A stretch of 64,000 bases of DNA from Blastocladiella emersonii ATCC 22665. Its lineage: Eukaryota; Fungi; Blastocladiomycota. The stretch is taken from contig JANHCV010000002.1 of NCBI GenBank assembly GCA_025594325.1, positions 1,736,001-1,800,000 on the forward strand. Direction: 5' to 3'. The notes beneath the pieces were generated by a model that was given only the letters and a program-made list of their open reading frames with translations, ran no database searches and was not told where the DNA came from. Shown here piece after piece: positions 39,645 to 60,536 of the stretch (position 1 is its first letter; each line of letters begins with the position of its first letter). Made by a program: the position numbers and the translations under genes.

Positions 39645-42644
39645 TCACTTGCGCGCCGGCGAGTTCAGTGGCGCGTTGGACACGACTGACATGGCGCGCG
39701 ACTTGGACGAGGTCGGACTCCCACCGCCGCCGTTACCCGATGTGGTGCGCTTGATCATCCCCGTCGTCGCGCCAGGCCCGCCGCCCGCGCCGAGCGCCGA
39801 GCTCAGGATCGCGACCCACTTCTGGTACTCCTCCTCGCCGGGCAGCTGGATCGCCCATGCCTTGCCGCGGGCCGAGACCTCGATACAGTTGCGGAGCCCG
39901 GGCGGCGTGATGTCGATGATGGCGGCCGACAGCCGCACGACGACGCCGAGCTCTGGGTTGGTGTTGGCGGGCAGCATCGACAGCTGGCTGTCGATGACGC
40001 TGAGGATCACGTTGTGGGAGTGCCACGTCGACATGAGCCCGCCCTGCTTCTTGACCGGGTACGTGCTGCGGACGTGCGTCACCTTGCCGTTGACCTCGGC
40101 CACGGCAACCTTGTTCGCGGCCGTTGTTCCGTTCGCGGTGCCGAGCGCCGAGCGCGTCATGGACGCGGTGCCGCCCTCGCTCGTGCAACCCTGGTTGCTG
40201 CCCTGGCCGCCGGCCGAGCCGCCGCCGCCGTTGCGCTTGACCTGCAGGTACACAACGTACACGAGGCGGCCGACCAGCGCGGTGAAGGTGAACGTCGTCG
40301 CGTAGATGATGACGACCTGCTTGACGACAAAGGCGGCGAGCGTCGAGTCGCCGAACGAGAAGAAGGCGAAGAGCGCGACCACGATGCCGGACAGGAACAT
40401 GTTCTGCAAGGACGAACTTGAGGGTCAGTGCTCCCGTTTGCGCGACACGAGTAGTGAGTGAGCTCACGCACCTGGCTGACGTAGAAGAGCCAGATACTCT
40501 CGCGGAACCCGCTCGCGACGTTGCGCGTCTTGTACGCGAGGATCGTGAGCACGCAGAGGAGCAGGATGTTGTAGGCCAGCGTCGCGCCCGACAGGCCCAT
40601 GTTGAACGTGGGGCTGGCGCTCTGGCACACATAATAATAATAGGTGCGCGACGAGACGATCTGGGCGAGCTGTGGGCCGGCGCCCGACCACACGACGAGC
40701 AGGATCGTCTGGATCAGCATGACCACGGCGACGCCCGACAGCAGCGACTTGTTGCCGACGCGCGAGACGCTAATCATGGCCTTATTGTCGAAGATGCTCC
40801 AGATCTACATGCAGAGCCGCGGTCCGGGTCAGTCGTGCACGTAACTCGAGTTGTCAGAGTAAGCGGTATCACGTACGCGATAGGCCTTGGCCGCGCTACT
40901 CGCCAGGACGAGCTGGACGCCGTACGTGAAGAACCAGAGAGAGACCTGGCACGAACCGCTGGTCGGCTCGCCGAGTGCCGCGAGGTTGCTGGCGAGAACG
41001 AGCGCGCAGCCGACGCAGATGAGTGTGAGGAAGGGGAAGGAGAGGTTCTTGACGGCCGGGATCGTCCGGTGGACGTAGAGGTACGCGTTGGACGCGAGAA
41101 TCAGGGCGAGCAGGAGCGCGTTGGCGATGGCCAGACCGATACCCGAGGACTGGTTCCAGCGCGCGAACAGCGGGACCTGTTCGGGCCGGTCGCGCGGGAT
41201 CTCGGACGTGCCCGAGTAGAACTTGGGCGGCGCCTTGGCCACGACCGACATGTCCGGGTTCACCTCGTACACGAGCGTGCGCTCCGATTTGAAGAAATTG
41301 AAGACCGAGAAGTAGGCGAGACGGTTGCCCTTGTCGTCGAACTTGACCGTGCCCGACACGCCCTCGAATGGGACCAGAAAGTGCTTGGTCATGTTGGGCT
41401 GGTAGTTGCCCGACAGGAAGCTGTTGAGCCCGACGTCCGCGACCGCCTACACGCGAGTTTGGGTTAGCTCGAGGACGACCGTTCGCGCAAGCTCGGAGGC
41501 ATACACGCAGAATGCCCTGCGCAAGCGTCGTGACGCAATCCTGGAAGAGGAACGAGTAGGTCGCGACCGAGACGCCTGGGTACGCCGCGTTCCAGCGCGC
41601 GAGCGCCGTGTTGTAGAGCGCGTTGAAGCTGTCCTCGCGCGGCATCACGTACATGAACCCGTTGACGTTCTCGTTGTCGGCTGCCGAGAGGCCCATGTCG
41701 GCGTACAGCGACCATGCCTCGGGGCCTAGCCACACCGTGTCGGGGCCGACCATGCCGAAGAGCTTGGCCTGGCGGAGCAGGTTCACGCCGTCGTCGGGGA
41801 GCATGGCGGCGATGATGATCTGCGAGCCGCCGGCGAGGATCGCCTTGAGGACGCCCGTGAAGTCGGTCTGGCCGGGCTGGAAGACCTGGCTCGCCGTGAT
41901 GGTGATGCCGAGCGCGGGCGCGCGCGTGAGGAAGGTGCCCGAGACTACACGGACCGAGCAGGGTGTGAGTCGGGTACTCGCGAACGCGCGCCACGATTCC
42001 ACGCGTACCCGACTGCCCGTACGAATCAGAGCTGGCAATCACGGACGCCGACGACCAGCCCATGGACTTGACAAAATGCGCGAGAATCTCGCCCTGCGCC
42101 GGGTCCGTCGCCATGGTGCGCATGAAGTACGGGTAGTTGGCCTTGTCCGAGAGCGTACCGGAACTCGCCGAGCCACTGCACATCCACGTCTTGGTGCGCG
42201 TTCCCGCGAGCGACGACGGGATCGTGTGCGACGACGCGTAGTCGCCGACCACGGCCGAGACACCCTTGTCGACGACGGCGTTGAGCATGGCCTGCGTGGC
42301 CGTCATGGCCGAGTAGTTGGTCGGCGTGAAGACGAGCGAAAAGTCATGGGTGCGCGTCGGGTCGATGGTCGCGAGATCCGGAATCCCGAGCTTGAGGAAG
42401 TTGACGATCCCCGTCATGGACGACCCGAGCGAGGCCGTCGTGTAAGGCAAGTTGACGCCAATCTACACATGCACACGCGCGCGAGCGGGACGCACGCGTC
42501 AGCCCGCGTCAGGGCGCGCCACGCGGTGAGGCACACGTGTACTTTGAACGTGTATGGCGTCGTCGGCGCGATCATGCATAACATGCACGCGAGCAAGCAC
42601 GTCGCCCAGACGGGCCAGTGCGACCCGCAGCGGCGTGATTCCAT
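39645..42644 (-). CDS. Class C (GABA-B/glutamate-like) GPCR: signal peptide, Venus-flytrap domain, 7TM_3 and a C-terminal PH-like domain; paralog A
   Basis: Signal peptide MESRRC...TTPYTFK|IGVNLP. VFT motifs (AVVGDYASS, LSDKANYPYFMRT, GVSGTVKFDDKGNR). 7TM_3 motifs (SFPFLTLICVG, AKAYR|IWSIFDN, LAYKTRNVASGFRES). Five GT-AG introns. Confidence 0.92.
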
Positions 42645-51615: not shown

Positions 51616-54600
51616 ATGTCAAAGAAACCCGCCGGCGGTGGCGCCGCGGCCGCCGCCAACGCGAAAAAGTCCAAGGACCCCAACGTCCTCTACCCGCCGC
51701 GCGACGTGCCTATCCCGCTCGCCCTGCCCGAAGCGCGCCGCATCACCGTCTCAGCGCACGACCTCGGTGCTGCCGTGGCTGCGTCGCCGCCGCGACCCAC
51801 ACTCCTACGCCCGCTCAACGCAGGTCCGCACTTTTCGGCCGGGACCGAGAAGAAGCTCTCGACCGTCGTCGCCGCCGAGACCAAGCGCAAGCAGGACGCG
51901 CAGAGACGGCTCGCCGAGTCGCAACAGCAGCAGACAGTCGCCGCCCCGAGTCCGGCCGAGTCGAAGCTCGGCGTCCCCGCACCCGCCGCCGGACGACGCG
52001 GGTCCGTCGCTCCACCACCTGCAGCACCTCCAGCTGCCGCCAAGGCCGCTGAAAAGGCGCCCGCACGTAAACCGAGCGGTGCTGCTGCTGGGGCTGCCAA
52101 GGGCAAGCCCGCCGATGCAGCAGGCGGGTCGGCCTCGCGCCGCGAGTCGGGCGGTGCTGCTGCACCCGCGAGCTTCGCGTCCGATCCCGCGCTCGCCGAC
52201 GTCTTTGCCAAACTGCCCAGCATCCCGTTCCGCGCCCCGAAACCCAACGACCGCCCGCTGACCCCGCCGGCGCCGCTCCGCCCGCGCGTCCTCGATGCGC
52301 CGACCGACGAGACGCTGCACCCGGCGGACCCGTCGATCCGCGTCCAGTACAGCGCCGCGCGCCGTGCCCACCTCGCATGGCGCGAGGGTCAGGAGCTCGA
52401 GTCCGAGATACCCTTCGACTCTGCGCCGCCGCCACCGCCGACCGCCGGTGACCTCCTCGACGCGTCCGTCTCGACGACGACGACGCGCAGCCTCGACCTC
52501 GTCGTCGCCGCCAACGCCGAGGGCGAGACGGTCGCGGAGCGCAAGTGGTGGCAGCTCGTCGCGTGGGAGGACGCACAGGCCGCGCGCCTGTGGGACCGGC
52601 TCGACGGTGCCGTGCTCGCGTTCCAGGACGCCGTCGACCGGTGCATGGACGACCACTGGGCCGAGCAGGACCGCATCGGCGACCGTATCCTTGCCCAGGC
52701 CGCGCGGATCCGTAACGAGTCGCCCGCGTGGCCGCGCGACCAGCTCCTGACCGAGCTCGAGACGCTGCGCGAACTCGTGACCGACGACGCGTACGTGTTC
52801 GACCTCGCCGAGAGCGAGCTGGCGTGGCACCAGGAGGACGCCGCCGGACGCGTCGCCGAGTCCGTCGACCGGTTCCGCGCCCGCATCCTCGTGCTCCCGG
52901 GCACCCGCGAGGCTGAGGAGGCGGTTGATGAGACCGAGGAGTGCGATAACGCGGACCGCGGCGGCGAGCCTGTTGCGGCTGGTCTCGCTGCGCTCATCCC
53001 GTCGCGCGCCCGGTCCCTGCAGCTGCTCGCGCACCGCGAGCTCGTGCGCGCCAGCATCGACCTGCTCCGCGTCCGCCAGGAGGCGTCGGCGCTGCTCCTC
53101 GGGCTCCAGGTCTCGACCACGCGCCGGTTCCACGACGGCGTCCAGCCCGTCGTCGCCTGGGTGTACGCCGAGTGGCCGCTCGCCCGCGCAAGACACATCG
53201 TCGACCAGTTCCGCGCCACGCACACGTCGCGCGAATGGGTCCGCAACGTCGCGCAGCGCGTCGTTGCGGTGCTCGACGCGCTCGTTGTCCGGTGCCGCCA
53301 CGCCGCCCAGACCCCGACGACGCCCGGTGGAGCGCGGCGTCGGTCGAGCGAGGACCCGCTCGACGCGTCGTTTGCCGAGGCTCCGCCGCTCGACCTCCCG
53401 CCGCTCCCGCTCGCCATTGACGCGGCGGCTGTCGAGGACGCGGTCAAGAACCTGAACCGCTTCCTGTCGGCGATGCAGCACGAGCACGTCGGGCGCGTCA
53501 CGGCGGCGCTGAAGCGCGCGGTCCGCGACCTCCTCGAGGCCGCGCTCCCGTGGCCCGGCCAGCTCACGGACTTTGACACGCTCACGAGGATCGCGAGCGT
53601 CGGCGGCGTGACGGTCGCCGAGCTCGAGCCGTGGTGGATCGGCCGCGCGCTCGCCGCCGATGTCCGGCGGCCCGACTGGGTCCACTTTTTGTACCTCGTC
53701 GGCCGCGAGGCGACCGCGGCCGTCGAGACGCTCGCAGACACGATCCGCGTGGCAAGGCGCTACGCGCGGTGCCTGCACGAACAGTGGGCGATGCAGCAGG
53801 CCGAGATGGCGCGCGTCCGCCGCACGCTCGAGCAGCAGCTCGCCGAGAGCCAGCACGTGCACGACGACGACGTCGCCAAGCACCAGCGCGAGCTCGACCG
53901 ACAGCTTCGCGCCATGGCGGCCGCGACGACCGAGTCTGAGTGTGTCGCCGTCTATGACACGATCAAGGCGATTCTGAGCGAGCTCGAGTATGGTACGGAC
54001 TTTGGAGTGCACTCACTGTACACGCGCGACGTCGCTAACCTGGACCGTTCGCCTGTAGCCTACTCGTCGCGGGCTCGACAGATCAACATGCTCGTCTCGG
54101 GCACCGACGAGGGCGCCGTGTCCAAGTTCGACGGCTACCAGCAGCGGTGGAGCGAGATGATCGTCACTGACTCGATCGACCCGGCGGTTCTGCGCGCCAA
54201 AATCGCCTCGTTCGAGCAGTCCAAGCGGCCGTCGCACGTCGGCTTCGCCGAACGCGCGCGCGGACCCGGCGTCGTGACCATCCGCGAGGACACGAGCAAC
54301 AATGCCTCGCCAACACCCGACCAGTCGGCGGCCGCGGCGGCTGCGCGCGGACCGTCGTACGACGACGACCTCAGCGTGTCGTTCACGGGCAAGCCCGCCG
54401 CCTCGAAGAAGAAGCGCGGCCGCGCCAAGGACACGCCGACCCCGACTGCCATCAACTTCCAGCGGCCGTCCGGGACCCACGCGACGCCGTCCACCGACGC
54501 TGCGCGGGGACCGGCGTCACCCGCCAAGTCGCCCGCGACTCCCGCCACGGGCCCGCTCAACACCAGCAGTCTTGACGGCGTCGTGCTCGGCGGCAACTAC

Positions 54601-57081
54601 ACGCTGGGCCCGGACGTGTGTCCGCGCGGGTTCACGCTCGACGCCGAGCTCGACGCGATCCGCGTGAGCATCCACGAGCTGGTCCAGCAGCCCATGGCGG
54701 TGCTGCAGGTCGCGCTGACGAGCCACTGCACCGCGTACCGCGCGGCGTTCGAGACGTGGCGCGACTCGACGATCGCGACGCTGACGGAGCTCGAGAAGGC
54801 GTCGCTCGCGCGCACCGCCAACCTCGTGCACGCCAAGGGGTACGCGCACGAGCAGCGCGGGCGCCAGCTGCAGCACACGTTCACGCAGCGGCTGCTCGCG
54901 ATCCAGGCGACCAAGCAGGCCGCGCGCAAGCAGGCCAAGGACCGCGAGGGCGCCCTCGTCGCGCTCGCCGAGCAGTGGCGCGCCGCTGTCGAGACCGCCG
55001 AGGGCATCCTCCAGTCGCACCTCCAGAAACTCGTCGCCGACCACGACGTCGTCACCGAGTCGCTCACGCTCGTCGAGGTCGAGCGCAGGAAACGCGCGGC
55101 CGCGGCGACGGTCGCGGCGGGGACCGACAAGGCGTCCAAGCTCATCGGCCCGCTGCAGGAAAAGTGGGCCGCGTTGTCGGCCGAGCTCAACGCGGTCCTC
55201 GAGCAGGCCAACCAGGACTCGCGGTCAGGCACCCCCGACGGCGCCGACGACGCGGTGCCGCGCGGGTACCTCGGCAACGGCGGCGCGGGCCCCGCGATCT
55301 CGGGCGCCACGGCCGGCGGGCTCGGCCAGGTCAAGGTCCTTACCGTGCAGGGCCTCGAGGGCAAGCTGACCGAGGTGACGGCGCAGTTCCGCGAGGGCGC
55401 GCAGCGCGTTGCAAAACTCCGCGCCCGCCTCAACGAGTCGCTTACAGGCGTCCAGACGGTCCTCACCGGGTACGCCGCCGAGCTCGAGGTCGTGCGCAAC
55501 CTCCAGACGGCGCTCGGGCGCGCCAAGACGCGGCTCCGGTCGACGCTCCTCGCGGACCAGGCCGCGCATGCCGCCGCCATGGCGGATCTTCGTGCGCGGC
55601 TCGACGAACTGCACGCACACGGCGGGAACGAGGGCGGTAGCTGCAACGAGCTCTTTGTCGTGGTCCCGCCGAGCCGCCAGGGGAAGCGGAATTCGATGCC
55701 GCACGTTGTCACCACGAGCGGGAGTCGGCGGTCCTCGCGCGCTCAGCAATGCGCGGCGGACGGTCACGCCGCGACAGCCGCGGATGAGCCATCGACGCAG
55801 GACGCGTTCTGGCAGTCGTTCTGCGCCGACGTCGTTCGTGTCGTCGAGATGTGGAACGCTGCTGCCGCGCGGAACCGCGTGCTCGGGATTCCCGCACAGC
55901 CCATCGCCGTGCCCAAGCTCATGTCGTGGTCCGACGTATCCGCCCTCCTCACCGCCGCGCAGTCGGGCGGCAGCGAGACGGGGACCAAGTCGACCAACTC
56001 GGCCGCGTCGTCGCGCACCGGCAGCGGCGAGGCCAAGTCGCGCGGCAGCGGCACGCGGTCCAAGCGCGGTAGCGTCAGCTTTGCCGGCACCCCGACGACC
56101 GCGTCAACTGATTCCGCGCAGCCCGCGTCCCCGTCCCGCACCGCCGACGCCGCGTCCATGGACTCGTGGCTGCAGACGCTCGACGCCGAGCTGGCCCAGG
56201 TGTGCGACACGCTCGTCCCGCGGCGGCAGTGGGCGACGGGGAACCGCTCGTGGTCCATGGTCGACAGCATCGTGGCGGCCGCATGGGCGGCACAGATCCG
56301 GTCCGAGATGGCGGACCTCGTCGCGCAGCACCACGAGTCGTGCGTCCGCGACCTGCACTACTGGCAGCACACCGTGTTCCCGTCGCTCGCGCAGGGCCTC
56401 CTCGACCGCGGCGTGCGGCGCCTCGGCAAGTGGATCGCGCTCGAGTGGCAGCAGCTCCGCGACGCCGCGCAGGCCCGCGTACAGGCGGCGAATGCCGAGG
56501 ACCAGAAGGCGCGGCGTGCGCGGTGGGATGGGACGCTGCGGGCATGGCGACCGGGGTCAACGGAACCGCAAGCACGTCGTGACCCGTCGACGGTCGCGGC
56601 CGAGTGGCTCGGTCAGGTGCTCGCCGAGAACGCGGCGTGGACCAAGTCGGCGCTCGAGGAGGGCGCGCGGCAGCACATGCGCGAGCTCGGCTCGCGGTGT
56701 CGCACGACCGACCTCGCATCGCTCGTGTACCTCGCAATGTTGCTTGCGCCGCTCACGCACCTGCTCGCAGCAGCAACCGAGGGCGCTGCTATTGCCATGA
56801 CGCCGGTTCCGCAGTGGCTGTCCGTGATCCCCGACATGACGGCCATCGAGTCGACCATCCACGCTGCGGCCGCGGCCACTACAATCGCACACAAGACGGT
56901 GCTCGCCAAGCGTGTCCTGACCGAGTGCCGTGCGCTCCTCGAGACCATCTCGACCGAGGAGCAGACCCTCGATCTCGTCGTGTGTCGTGCTGTGGACGCG
57001 GCACAGGCCGACCTGCAGGGCTGGCTCGCCGGGTGGACGGGCGCGCTGGATTTGATGCGGAGCGAGCTTTTTCATGTATAG
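51616..57081 (+). CDS. Large coiled-coil protein, probably CCDC180/CFAP76-like (DUF4455/4456), ciliary
   Basis: About 1800-aa helical ORF with one in-frame intron (about 53992-54058). The pattern of helical blocks (QQLAESQHVHDDDVAKHQRELDRQL...) recalls CCDC180 from memory; family call not verified. Confidence 0.5.
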   Translation: MSKKPAGGGAAAAANAKKSKDPNVLYPPRDVPIPLALPEARRITVSAHDLGAAVAASPPRPTLLRPLNAGPHFSAGTEKKLSTVVAAETKRKQDAQRRLAESQQQQTVAAPSPAESKLGVPAPAAGRRGSVAPPPAAPPAAAKAAEKAPARKPSGAAAGAAKGKPADAAGGSASRRESGGAAAPASFASDPALADVFAKLPSIPFRAPKPNDRPLTPPAPLRPRVLDAPTDETLHPADPSIRVQYSAARRAHLAWREGQELESEIPFDSAPPPPPTAGDLLDASVSTTTTRSLDLVVAANAEGETVAERKWWQLVAWEDAQAARLWDRLDGAVLAFQDAVDRCMDDHWAEQDRIGDRILAQAARIRNESPAWPRDQLLTELETLRELVTDDAYVFDLAESELAWHQEDAAGRVAESVDRFRARILVLPGTREAEEAVDETEECDNADRGGEPVAAGLAALIPSRARSLQLLAHRELVRASIDLLRVRQEASALLLGLQVSTTRRFHDGVQPVVAWVYAEWPLARARHIVDQFRATHTSREWVRNVAQRVVAVLDALVVRCRHAAQTPTTPGGARRRSSEDPLDASFAEAPPLDLPPLPLAIDAAAVEDAVKNLNRFLSAMQHEHVGRVTAALKRAVRDLLEAALPWPGQLTDFDTLTRIASVGGVTVAELEPWWIGRALAADVRRPDWVHFLYLVGREATAAVETLADTIRVARRYARCLHEQWAMQQAEMARVRRTLEQQLAESQHVHDDDVAKHQRELDRQLRAMAAATTESECVAVYDTIKAILSELEYGTDFGVHSLYTRDVANLDRSPVAYSSRARQINMLVSGTDEGAVSKFDGYQQRWSEMIVTDSIDPAVLRAKIASFEQSKRPSHVGFAERARGPGVVTIREDTSNNASPTPDQSAAAAAARGPSYDDDLSVSFTGKPAASKKKRGRAKDTPTPTAINFQRPSGTHATPSTDAARGPASPAKSPATPATGPLNTSSLDGVVLGGNYTLGPDVCPRGFTLDAELDAIRVSIHELVQQPMAVLQVALTSHCTAYRAAFETWRDSTIATLTELEKASLARTANLVHAKGYAHEQRGRQLQHTFTQRLLAIQATKQAARKQAKDREGALVALAEQWRAAVETAEGILQSHLQKLVADHDVVTESLTLVEVERRKRAAAATVAAGTDKASKLIGPLQEKWAALSAELNAVLEQANQDSRSGTPDGADDAVPRGYLGNGGAGPAISGATAGGLGQVKVLTVQGLEGKLTEVTAQFREGAQRVAKLRARLNESLTGVQTVLTGYAAELEVVRNLQTALGRAKTRLRSTLLADQAAHAAAMADLRARLDELHAHGGNEGGSCNELFVVVPPSRQGKRNSMPHVVTTSGSRRSSRAQQCAADGHAATAADEPSTQDAFWQSFCADVVRVVEMWNAAAARNRVLGIPAQPIAVPKLMSWSDVSALLTAAQSGGSETGTKSTNSAASSRTGSGEAKSRGSGTRSKRGSVSFAGTPTTASTDSAQPASPSRTADAASMDSWLQTLDAELAQVCDTLVPRRQWATGNRSWSMVDSIVAAAWAAQIRSEMADLVAQHHESCVRDLHYWQHTVFPSLAQGLLDRGVRRLGKWIALEWQQLRDAAQARVQAANAEDQKARRARWDGTLRAWRPGSTEPQARRDPSTVAAEWLGQVLAENAAWTKSALEEGARQHMRELGSRCRTTDLASLVYLAMLLAPLTHLLAAATEGAAIAMTPVPQWLSVIPDMTAIESTIHAAAAATTIAHKTVLAKRVLTECRALLETISTEEQTLDLVVCRAVDAAQADLQGWLAGWTGALDLMRSELFHV

Positions 57082-57370
57082 ACATCACATTCCCTGCTCG
57101 CCTCGTGTTCTCAGCTGCACGTGATAGCGCGACCCGCGTCTCGCGGGCCACCACAACGTCTCCCTCGCCTTGTCCGACGATTCTTTGTCTGGTGCTCCTC
57201 GCGTGTCGGGTTTGGCACCGCATGCGGACACGCGCTCAGGCCTGGCGACTCCCGGCCAGCTAGATCGAGGAGTTTTCAACCAGCTCGCCACACGCCTCCT
57301 CGACTTTGGCTGAAATGAATCTCATGCGCTCGTCATCCATGCAGTTGCCGCCTCTTCGAAACGCAACAAC

Positions 57371-60300
57371 ATGAAACATTGTCGTCAGAGCGCTCTGCGC
57401 GCGTGGATAAGCAGCTCGGGCCTGCTGGTTCTGCTCTTGGCATGCGTTCTCACGCCGGCGGGAGCGGTCACCTTCAAGGTTCGCACGGTGGCAACATCTC
57501 TATGTCGCAAAATCATGCTGAGCCCGCGAATCGATAGATCGGGGTGAACTTGCCGTTCACGACGCCGTCGCTCGGCCGGTCCATCACGGGCATTGTCGAC
57601 TTCCTCAAACTGAACGCCCCGGACCTCGCGAGGCTCGATCCGACGGGCACCCACAACTTTTCACTCGTCTACACGCCGACCAACTACACGGATGTCGCCG
57701 CAACGCAGGCGCTCCTCCACGCCGTCCTGGACGAGGGCGTAGTGGCCATCGTCGGCGACCTCGCGTCGTCGCACACGATCCCCGCCGCGCTCGCCGGCGC
57801 ACGGACCAAGACGTGGATCTGTAGCGGGTCGGCGAGCTCGTCTACGTTGTCGGACAAGGAAAACTACCCATAGCACGTTTCGCGCCCGTGATCTGCTTCA
57901 CGTACCTCACTGACAATCCGCTCGCCGCGTAGCTTCATGCGCACCATGGCCACGGACCCGGCGCAGGGTGAGATCCTGGCGCACCTTGTCCGGTCCATGG
58001 GCTGGGCCACGGCCTCAGTCATCTCGAGCTCGGACTCGTACGGTTCCAGCGGTACCTCTCTTCACTTGACGCTTCCACGTCGCTGGCTCACTCATCACTC
58101 TCACCGTAGTTTCGACGGCATTCGTGACGCGCGCGACGCAGATCGGCATCACGATCTCTGCGAACCAGGTGTTCCAGCTCGGCCAGGCCGACCTGACGGG
58201 CGTCCTGAAGGCGATCCAGGCGGGCGGCTCGCGCATCATCGTGGCCGCCGTGTTCACGGACGACGGGACCAACCTCCTGCGTCAGGCCAAGGCGCACGGC
58301 ATGATCAACGCCGACACGGTTTGGCTGGGGCCTGAGGTACGTCGACGCTGGCGCGGCACACTGCGCACTGCGTGGACAACGCTGACACGATGTTTAGGTC
58401 TGGGGCATGTACATTGACACGGCCATCTCGGACGACGACATCCAGAGCATCAACGGGCTCATGTACGTGATGCCGCGCGAGGACAGCTTCAACACGCAGT
58501 ACAACGCGTCTCTCGCGCGCTGGAACGCCGCGTACCCGGACGTGCCCGTCGCGACCTACTCGTATCTCTTCCAGGACTGCGTGACGACCATCGCGCGTGG
58601 GATCTTGAGCGTACGGCCATCGACGCCTCGTGCCGACCGCATCGTTGCTCATCCTCGCGTTCTTGTAGACGGTCGCTGACGTCGGCACCAGAAATTTCCT
58701 CGCAGGCAACTATCAGCCAAACATGACCAAGCACTTCTTGGTCCCGTTCGAGGGCGTGTCGGGTGCGGTGCAGTTCACCGCCGAGGGCGACCGCAAATCC
58801 TTCTTCTCGGTCTACAACTATTGGGACGGCAAGCGCACCCTCGTGTACGAGGTAAACCCGGACCTCAACGTGGTGCCCAAGGCGCCGCCTCGGTTCTTCT
58901 CGGGGTCGTCGGCCATCCCGCGCGACCGGCCCGAGCAGACACCGCTGTTCGCGCGCTGGAACCAGTCGTCTGGCATGGGCCTCGCGATCGTCAACGGGCT
59001 GCTCATCGCCCTGATTCTCGCGAGCAACGTGTACCTGTACACGAAGCGCACGGTGCCGGCAGTAAAGCACCTCTCGTTCCCCTTCCTCACGCTCATCTGC
59101 GCCGGGTGCGTGCTCGTGCTCAGCAGCAACCTCGCGGCGCTCGGCCAGCAGACGACCATGTCGTGCCAGCTCTCCCTGTGGCTGTTCGTGTACGGCGTCG
59201 AGCTGGTGCTGGCGAGCAGCGCGGCCAAGGCGTACCGCGTACGTGTGTTCATGGTCGAGCAGCAGCAAGGCCAAGCTAACGAGTGATTGTCGTGTAGATC
59301 TGGAGCATCTTCGACAACAAGGCCATGGTCAGCCTGTCGCGTGTCGGCAATCAGTCGCTGTTCCTCGGAGTCGGGTGCATCATGCTGGTGCAGACGTGCC
59401 TGCTCGCCATCTGGTCGGGTGCGGGCCCGCAGATCGCGCAGCTCGTGTCGCAGACCACCTACTTTTACTACGACTGCCAGAGCGCGAGCGTGACGTTCCA
59501 CAAGGGCCTGGCGGGCGCGACGCTTGCGTACAACTTTTTCCTCCTGGTCGTGCTGACGTACCTCGCGTTCAAGACGCGCAAGGTGGCGAGCGGGTACCGC
59601 GAGAGCACCTGGCTCTTCTACGTCAGCCAGAACTTCACCATTTGCGGGATCGTGGTCGGGCTGTTCGCCTTCTTCTCGTTTGGCGAGTCGACGCTCGCCG
59701 CGTTCGTGGTCAAGCAGGTGATCATCATCTACGCGACCTTCTTCACGTTTTCGGCGCTGGTCGGGCGGCTCGTGTACCGCGTGTACCCGCGGTCGGGCCC
59801 GGCGCGGCTCGGCGGCGGGCGCAGCGGGCTCGTGGGCGCTGGCAACAATGGCAGCGGGATCGTCGGCGGTGGGAGCGGGCACGCGCATAGGCACGGCAGC
59901 AGTCACCACGGCCACGCCGGCAGCAACCACGGGCACGGCGGGACGGGCAGCGGGATCGCGCCGGCCAACGCGTCGTCTTCGGCAACGTCGCGATCCGGGC
60001 TCGGCGCCAACATCGAGGCGGCGCTCGCGCCGCCGGCGGTGCGGGTGGCGACGACCGAGAGCAACGGCAAGGTGACGCACGCGCGCGGCGTGTACCCGGT
60101 CAAGCGGCACGCCGTGTTCGCGACGTGGGTCAACCATACGGTGGTGCTCAACGTCGTGGACGGGCAACTGACGCTGATCCCGGCCAAGGTCGACCCCGAG
60201 CACGGCGCCGCGATCCGCGTCGCGCTCGCCATGATCGACCTGGCGCCGCCCGGGATGCGGCACTGCATCGAGGTGACCGCTCGCGGCACCACGTGGCTGA

Positions 60301-60536
60301 TCCAGCTCAGCAGCGAGGATGAGGTGCAGCAGTGGGCGGCGCTGTTCGCGACCTGTCTCGGCGGCGGCAGCGGGGCCGCGCCGGCCGTGCACGGCGGGAT
60401 CCGCGTGACGCTGTCGGCGAGCAACCTCAGCGGCGGCACGGCGGCATCGCCGATGTCGCCCGTGGCGGCCGCGTCGGCGGGTCGGCCCGTCACGTCGAGC
60501 TCGCTGCTCGCTGCGCCGCACGCGTCGGCCAAGTAG
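57371..60536 (+). CDS. Class C GPCR with a C-terminal PH-like domain; paralog B
   Basis: Signal peptide ...VLTPAGAVTFK|IGVNLP. Colinear with paralog A through the VFT, 7TM and PH parts. Six introns, including a GC-AG intron at 57873-57932. Confidence 0.92.

Follow-up and report, generated by a model that had tools for sequence, protein, structure and literature searches.

Several kinds of G protein–coupled receptor (GPCR) are fused to a cytoplasmic domain, including the GPCR-PIPK proteins (RpkA), the GPCR-RGS proteins (AtRGS1), the oomycete 'GPCR-bigrams', and GPR155 with its C-terminal DEP domain. All follow one principle, in which a seven-transmembrane (7TM) core bears a folded signaling module on its C-terminal tail, and domain shuffling in GPCRs has been discussed by de Mendoza 2014 and in an eLife 2025 paper. 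Among fungal receptors, the GABA-B-type class C GPCRs (the fungal 'Glutamate family' or class 16), which join an ANF_receptor/Peripla_BP_6 ectodomain to a 7tm_3 core without the NCD3G domain, show enrichment among Blastocladiomycota and Chytridiomycota (J Fungi 2025, PMC12842992). Here, we describe two receptors of this type, paralogs A and B, encoded in a 64,000-nucleotide stretch of the Blastocladiella emersonii ATCC 22665 genome (contig JANHCV010000002.1, positions 1,736,001 to 1,800,000; 66% G+C), which we call the window and to which coordinates refer unless a contig is named. Both apply the same principle with a different partner, since their C-terminal tails carry a pleckstrin homology (PH) domain. 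While GPCR-PIPK, GPCR-RGS, and GPR155 combine catalytic or DEP partners with 7TM cores that are not class C, the partner here is noncatalytic and the core is class C. The PH domain is the sole folded module in the tail, which has neither the catalytic nor the GAP domain that defines GPCR-effector fusions. Animal GABA-B receptors, by comparison, have a coiled-coil tail.

Paralog A (39645..42644, minus strand) and paralog B (57371..60536, plus strand), which lie 15 kb apart on opposite strands, almost certainly share one layout: a signal peptide, a Venus flytrap (VFT) ectodomain, no Cys-rich domain, a 7TM core, a Gly-rich linker of 50 to 90 residues, a bona fide diverged PH domain, and finally a short end rich in Ser, Thr, and Pro, all derived from one old fusion that has since radiated. 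In a Pfam scan of the two receptors, PF00003 was above threshold in both, covering profile positions 2 to 242 of 251, as were PF01094 and PF13458, while the Cys-rich NCD3G domain gave no match at E ≤ 0.05. As judged from this domain content, a VFT joined to 7tm_3 without a Cys-rich domain, A and B are GABA-B-like class C GPCRs, as the initial annotation of the window had proposed. The tail peptides on which that annotation was based are present in both receptors, where they follow TM7 and a Gly-rich linker (39789-40091 in A; 60063-60362 in B). Because TM6-7 in paralog A, and TM4-7 in paralog B, share one exon with the PH domain, joining receptor and tail requires no splicing event. The last exon of paralog A is one open frame (39645-40409, minus strand) running from TM6-7 through the linker and the PH-like core to a 47-residue tail, and that of paralog B (59298-60536, plus strand) runs from TM4-7 through a 92-residue linker and the core at 60063-60362 to a 57-residue tail.

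The identification of the tail module as a PH domain, first made from the sequence alone, was borne out by several methods. We built a profile and alignment (A1) from the 14 clean copies among 18 genome matches to the tail of paralog A. An AlphaFold2 model of the paralog A module based on this alignment had a predicted local distance difference test (pLDDT) score of 91.1 and a predicted template modeling (pTM) score of 0.84, with seven strands (residues 2-12, 19-27, 32-37, 46-49, 54-56, 65-70, and 73-78) followed by a C-terminal helix (82-96). When this model was compared with the Protein Data Bank (PDB) using Foldseek, the best 50 matches were all classical PH domains, with template modeling (TM) scores of 0.6 to 0.76, led by the PH domain of ASAP1 (5c79; E 3e-6, TM score 0.75). 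Its structural neighbors in the ESM Atlas were the PH domains of ArfGAP, RhoGAP, TBC1D2, DAPP1, and PHLPP proteins (TM scores 0.70 to 0.77). At the sequence level, 20 of the 21 PDB matches to profile A1 were PH domains, the best being those of ORP11 (E 2.7e-4) and ASAP1 (E 2.5e-3), followed by CERT, centaurin, TAPP1, and spectrin. PH domains were reached only by this 14-paralog profile; a single-sequence phmmer search of the PDB with the tail of paralog A gave no match. An ESM Atlas feature search gave no usable match. In an exhaustive HMMER scan of 1.84 billion representative proteins, profile A1 retrieved 79 proteins at E ≤ 1e-3, of which ~50 consist of ectodomain, 7TM core, and C-terminal module. 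Ten matches that are not receptors were scanned with Pfam, and seven of these proved to be classical multi-PH or ArfGAP-PH proteins (E 1e-8 to 1e-6). Since profile, model, structural neighbors, and exhaustive scan all agree, the module is a genuine, if diverged, PH domain rather than one that only resembles PH.

Standard annotation misses the tail of A and B. The Pfam PH model (PF00169) scores paralog A at 15.7 to 19 bits against a gathering threshold of 25.1 and does not list paralog B. PF00169 is matched at E ≤ 0.01 by 24 of 48 aligned tails, and only ~4 score close to the gathering threshold; a Catenaria homolog (P0001) exceeds it with 32 bits. The subthreshold scores of A and B could be taken to mean that the tail belongs to another PH-like branch (PTB, EVH1, RanBD, or GRAM) or that the PH-like model is an artifact, and a few EVH1 and Ran-binding-domain matches do appear low in the list for a chytrid model discussed below. 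We consider this very improbable, since those 50 best matches for paralog A are classical PH domains without exception, the profiles reach PF00169 proteins without any other PH-like family, and both the β1-β2 pattern and the helix Trp are classical. The latter is W88 in A and B and is found in 41 of the 48 tails (85%), with Phe in three of the remainder.

We then compared the two paralogs segment by segment. In a global alignment, A and B are 66% identical in the ectodomain and 73% in the 7TM core, but only 32% in the linker, where there are 33 gap columns, and 26% in the end tail. The PH core, in contrast, is ~50 to 51% identical with one gap (E 7.6e-33). By these identities the PH domain stands out as a conserved block flanked by disordered, fast-evolving segments, in keeping with the initial annotation, which had stated that the linkers diverged while the domain was kept. 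That annotation had also called A and B two distant paralogs, which is wrong because they are sister genes. In a tree of the 7TM region from 51 loci, for which the exon-wise hidden Markov model matches were concatenated per locus, A and B are mutual closest relatives with a Shimodaira-Hasegawa-like approximate likelihood ratio test (SH-aLRT) support of 97 and 77% identity over the tree columns. The argument from conservation holds solely through the wider sharing of the domain, by many paralogs that are more distant and by other genera. In the same tree, one clade of 22 receptors (SH-aLRT 98) bears the tail in all 22 members, the remaining five carriers lie in a neighboring clade, and there is none in the most distant, 12-member clade.

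We determined how common such receptors are in the genome by searching the 32.65-Mb, 21-contig assembly; the published assembly likewise has 21 contigs (PMC9730499). PF00003 marks ~64 class C loci, many of them in tandem or inverted clusters, a group of four PH-tailed genes at C1:2.868-2.875 Mb being one example. Of the 21 gene copies detected with profile A1, 20 are preceded at short distance, on the same strand, by a 7tm_3 match. The exception, at C7:758222 (L004/L063, G000:C7:754500-760000), consists of TM6-7 and PH only; the 3.7 kb upstream contain neither an ectodomain nor any more of the 7TM core, and the locus is a short gene or else a duplicate that was truncated. Small proteins of 230 to 290 residues made up of TM plus PH also occur in the protein library (P0004, P0006, and P0012). 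Some loci first scored as negative have a tail after all: it is clear in L020 and L021, while for L032, L034, and L054 a status of PH-minus was considered and rejected, since reading of the tails and a broadened profile (A2) show diverged PH-like tails. Profile A2 also finds tails behind L044, L042, and L027, so that eight loci were added in all. The tail is thus present on at least 28 of the ~64 class C loci, which is a lower bound.

Beyond this genome, tail-bearing receptors are found in Blastocladiella emersonii, B. britannica, Catenaria anguillulae, Allomyces macrogynus, A. arbusculus, A. javanicus, Sorochytrium milnesiophthora, and Paraphysoderma sedebokerense, so that all five sampled genera of Blastocladiomycota are positive, and in one chytrid, Phlyctochytrium bullatum. 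The chytrid tail aligns to A1 with an hhalign probability of 96.7%, and its model has a PH fold (pLDDT 85) with the ASAP1 PH domain as top match, although the alignment behind this model is mostly blastoclad. The taxonomic range is a minimum, since species were traced for 30 of the 79 HMMER matches, and so is the spread beyond Blastocladiomycota, since the exhaustive search was made with the first profile, A1. Word-index searches with P0002 (residues 705-825), P0078 (750-870), and the full-length alignment A4 returned two, one, and four proteins, respectively, numbers that have no bearing on absence elsewhere. As for a clear donor gene for the tail, the nearest nonreceptor PH domain in the genome is that of a PAK kinase of the Cla4 type, laid out as PH-PBD-kinase (L065, 481-3270, minus strand; G000:C9:20980-23769), and this candidate was rejected since the match is too weak (E 1e-5).

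The PH domains that best match the receptor tails, in structure or by profile, are the classical ones of ASAP1, ACAP1, ADAP1/centaurin-α, ARAP, ORP11, CERT, TAPP1, and DAPP1. They have the same fold, the helix Trp, and the β1 Lys, but the receptor tails are only 13 to 20% identical to them, have far fewer basic residues in the β1-β2 and β3-β4 regions, and have His at the key β2 Arg position. Moreover, classical PH domains sit on soluble proteins that are recruited to the membrane, whereas the domain described here is carried by the tail of a receptor that is itself an integral membrane protein. The PH domain of GRK2 and GRK3, which binds Gβγ and phosphatidylinositol 4,5-bisphosphate [PI(4,5)P2], likewise acts at the activated GPCR, but on a soluble kinase.

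What might such a tail do? About half of human PH proteins are reported to bind phosphoinositides (PIPs) (PMC8282632), and ASAP1 PH, the closest solved relative, binds PI(4,5)P2 via its β1/β2 and β3/β4 loops (PMC7527224). Over the 48 tails, the conserved features are "PVK" in β1 (Lys/Arg in 92%), a β2 Trp (100%), "C-I-E" in β6, "Q-F" in β7, and the helix Trp, and we count the retention of the β1 Lys/Arg in favor of lipid docking, together with the residue at the place of the canonical β2 Arg, where 58% of the tails have His and 10% Lys/Arg. Several observations weigh against it. The highest conservation falls on the generic PH scaffold, and hence no functional surface can be singled out. In A and B the K-Xn-(K/R)-X-R motif is incomplete, with His in place of the β2 Arg (at the β2 positions, A has H-S-H and B has V-N-H). 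In addition, A and B each have two Lys/Arg in the β1-β2 segment as against seven in ASAP1 (the family mean is 2.9), their β3-β4 loops are neutral or acidic, and the net charge of the domain is +1 in A and -1 in B, within a family range of -5 to +6. Since basic residues are few in exactly the loops that ASAP1 uses, a classical high-affinity, headgroup-specific PIP3/PIP2 site in A or B appears unlikely from the sequence.

Weak binding may nevertheless suffice, since a flexible tether to a membrane protein lets even a weak affinity for anionic lipids hold the domain. Tethered to a membrane receptor, the PH domain would work at a very high local concentration and could dock by weak electrostatic contacts on acidic lipids of the inner leaflet (phosphoinositides or phosphatidylserine), through the conserved β1 Lys and β2 His/Arg positions. 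The docked tail would be held on the bilayer beside the face that couples to G proteins, where coupling, clustering, or trafficking might be tuned by local lipid state, by phosphorylation of the Ser/Thr-rich stretches on either side, or, through the conserved His, by pH. We put the probability of this explanation as a whole, a PH-tailed class C GPCR with lipid docking, at roughly 0.45; docking with such a tuning role is, taken by itself, a tentative proposal drawn from the residues just described.

Almost as likely as docking on lipids, although doubtful in its own right, is that the tail is a protein adaptor. The PH domain could preassemble Gβγ, Gα, an Arf/Arl-family GTPase, or a phosphorylated motif, and so serve as a scaffold, as a desensitizer, or as a signal for sorting to the flagellar or plasma membrane. 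This would suit the weakly basic loops and the incomplete lipid motif. It would also suit the kinship to ArfGAP-type PH domains (ASAP, ACAP, ADAP, and ARAP), which are the closest relatives in sequence and structure and some of which contact Arf, as ASAP1 PH does with Arf1 (PMC7527224), as well as a genome rich in G proteins, with ~9 to 10 Gα and ~5 RGS loci. However, that kinship is modest at 13 to 20% identity, and there is no family-specific conserved surface beyond the PH scaffold. Nor does the comparison of profile A1 with the PDB show a specific likeness to the PH domains of GRK2/3, GRK3 being matched at chance level (E 1.3). Of the roles that the initial annotation had suggested, built-in lipid or Gβγ sensing or self-desensitization, that of Gβγ sensing was considered on this score and was not raised above the other possibilities.

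The long flexible linker would also allow the PH domain to reach the 7TM face, whether its own or that of a dimer partner, and to block the G protein until ligand, lipid, or tail phosphorylation releases it. Ser/Thr-rich segments flank the domain, and PH-mediated autoinhibition has a precedent, e.g., Akt PH on its kinase domain (PMC9417420). Since the length and sequence of the linker are unconstrained, 52 versus 92 residues in sister genes, such a plug acting in cis is improbable. Another possibility is that the tail is largely vestigial or structural, an inherited folded spacer without a specific ligand and under weak selection. Consistent with this, the PH domain has evolved faster (50% identity between A and B) than the 7TM core (73%) or the ectodomain (66%), charge varies widely across the family, and a probable gene-conversion tract in the receptor pair L012/L015 covers the 7TM region and ends before the tail. 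Yet the domain has been kept almost without indels in at least 28 paralogs, in five blastoclad genera, and in one chytrid, and the linker and end on either side of it decay freely, which speaks against this improbable account. A more specific idea, a long shot about as improbable as the plug, is that the tail serves zoospore chemosensing as an adaptation module within the receptor, in which the PH domain would read PI3K/PI4P5K lipid or freed Gβγ in cis and switch off or relocate the receptor. If this were true, dozens of nutrient receptors would have adaptation built in and would need neither GRK nor arrestin-type machinery for it.

How far had such receptors been described? In agreement with the initial annotation, which knew of none, our literature search found no published description of a class C GPCR-PH fusion. 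The PH domain on these receptors is not mentioned in the B. emersonii genome paper (PMC9730499), Krishnan 2012 (PMC3251606), the 2025 fungal GPCR classification (PMC12842992), de Mendoza 2014, or the 2025 eLife GPCR survey. The last four of these papers deal with the diversity of N-terminal domains only, with no C-terminal PH. Whether the architecture had nonetheless been widely catalogued, which the initial annotation gave as grounds for dropping the idea, can be answered from precomputed Pfam assignments: it is not widely catalogued, but at least one Catenaria protein (ORZ38031.1/A0A1Y2HWA4) has PF00169 beside PF01094 and PF00003, whereas P0002, P0090, P0018, P0024, and P0078 lack PF00169. 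Since few tails reach the PF00169 gathering score, records of the architecture are limited to a handful of proteins; annotation at Pfam threshold misses most members, so surveys of fungal GPCR architecture underreport it. These PH-tailed class C GPCRs form a large, phylum-wide, and mostly unannotated subfamily.

This is of interest because, among the receptor families of zoosporic fungi, the class C GPCRs are the chief one to have expanded. A PH module on nearly half of the class C receptors, phylum-wide, offers a testable handle on lipid coupling, partner recruitment, or self-inhibition. The interest is tempered by the fact that both parts are well-known domains, that other GPCR tail fusions are known, and that the function proposed above is inferred.

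Paralog A corresponds to the public model H9P43_002525/KAI9188134.1 (P0002, 862 residues), which maps exactly onto the window, and proteins encoded in the window are identical to KAI9188134.1 and KAI9188139.1. The splice junctions of both paralogs are predicted, on the basis of the public gene model, GT..AG sites, and A-B homology. Paralog A has six exons on the minus strand (42575-42543, 42462-42010, 41945-41505, 41446-40877, 40804-40472, and 40403-39648, with the stop codon at 39645-39647), separated by introns of 58 to 80 nucleotides with GT..AG ends. With the public start at 42575, the N terminus has no signal peptide. An in-frame Met at 42644 is probably the true start; it would lengthen the protein by 23 residues that include a hydrophobic, signal-like stretch of the same kind as the N terminus of paralog B. 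The VFT ectodomain (ANF_receptor/Peripla_BP_6; PF01094 125 bits, PF13458 82 bits) spans 41294..42351 (P0002 residues 49-360, introns included) and the 7TM core (7tm_3; PF00003 111 bits) 40278..41161 (residues 405-652, two introns included). These are followed by the linker at 40092..40247 (52 residues, Gly/Ser/Thr-rich, low complexity), the PH domain at 39789..40091 (residues 715-815), and the C-terminal end at 39648..39788 (47 residues, Gly/Ser/Thr/Pro-rich), all on the minus strand.

For paralog B, we propose a first exon at 57371-57478, encoding the Met and signal peptide and followed by a 59-nucleotide GT..AG intron; the remaining exons, also on the plus strand, are 57538-57828, 57934-58050, 58109-58339, 58401-58610, 58669-59238, and 59298-60533, with the stop codon at 60534-60536. 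The junction between exons 1 and 2, "TFK|IGVNLP," is common to both paralogs. On the plus strand, the VFT ectodomain (ANF_receptor; PF01094 98.5 bits on P0007 residues 1780-2664) occupies 57649..58821, introns included, and the 7TM core (7tm_3; PF00003 107 bits) 58954..59756, one intron included. The linker is at 59787..60062 (92 residues, Gly/Ser/His-rich), the PH domain, which is a member of alignment A1 (family profile E 3.5e-33), at 60063..60362, and the C-terminal end at 60363..60533 (57 residues, Ser/Ala/Pro/Gly-rich).

L012 and L015 (G000:C1:1685582-1693839) are an inverted pair of PH-tailed receptors in which a 1,126-bp tract across the 7TM region is 99.6% identical, with an abrupt fall to 55 to 75% identity in the linker and PH domain; the tract looks like a recent gene conversion that ended before the tail. 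L017 and L018 (G000:C3:1269378-1269656 and 1354397-1354675) have identical PH domains in opposite orientation, separated by ~85 kb, a pattern suggestive of a segmental duplication that was recent and inverted. Intron positions around the PH domain also vary within the family. An in-frame stop, and therefore probably an intron, lies just before the domain in L003, L004, L005, L010, L013, and L017, and inside it in L007 and L016, while A and B have neither stop nor intron between TM7 and PH.

Finally, the public model for paralog B, H9P43_002530 (P0007, 2,664 residues; 51616-60536, plus strand), merges it with an unrelated upstream gene of 1,779 residues (51616-57075), for which only a weak DUF4455 match was seen. 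The merge spans a 462-nucleotide "intron," while other introns here measure 58 to 80 nucleotides. It is probably an annotation error, since paralog B has its own Met/signal-peptide exon, a 59-nucleotide GT..AG intron, and an exon junction like that of paralog A.

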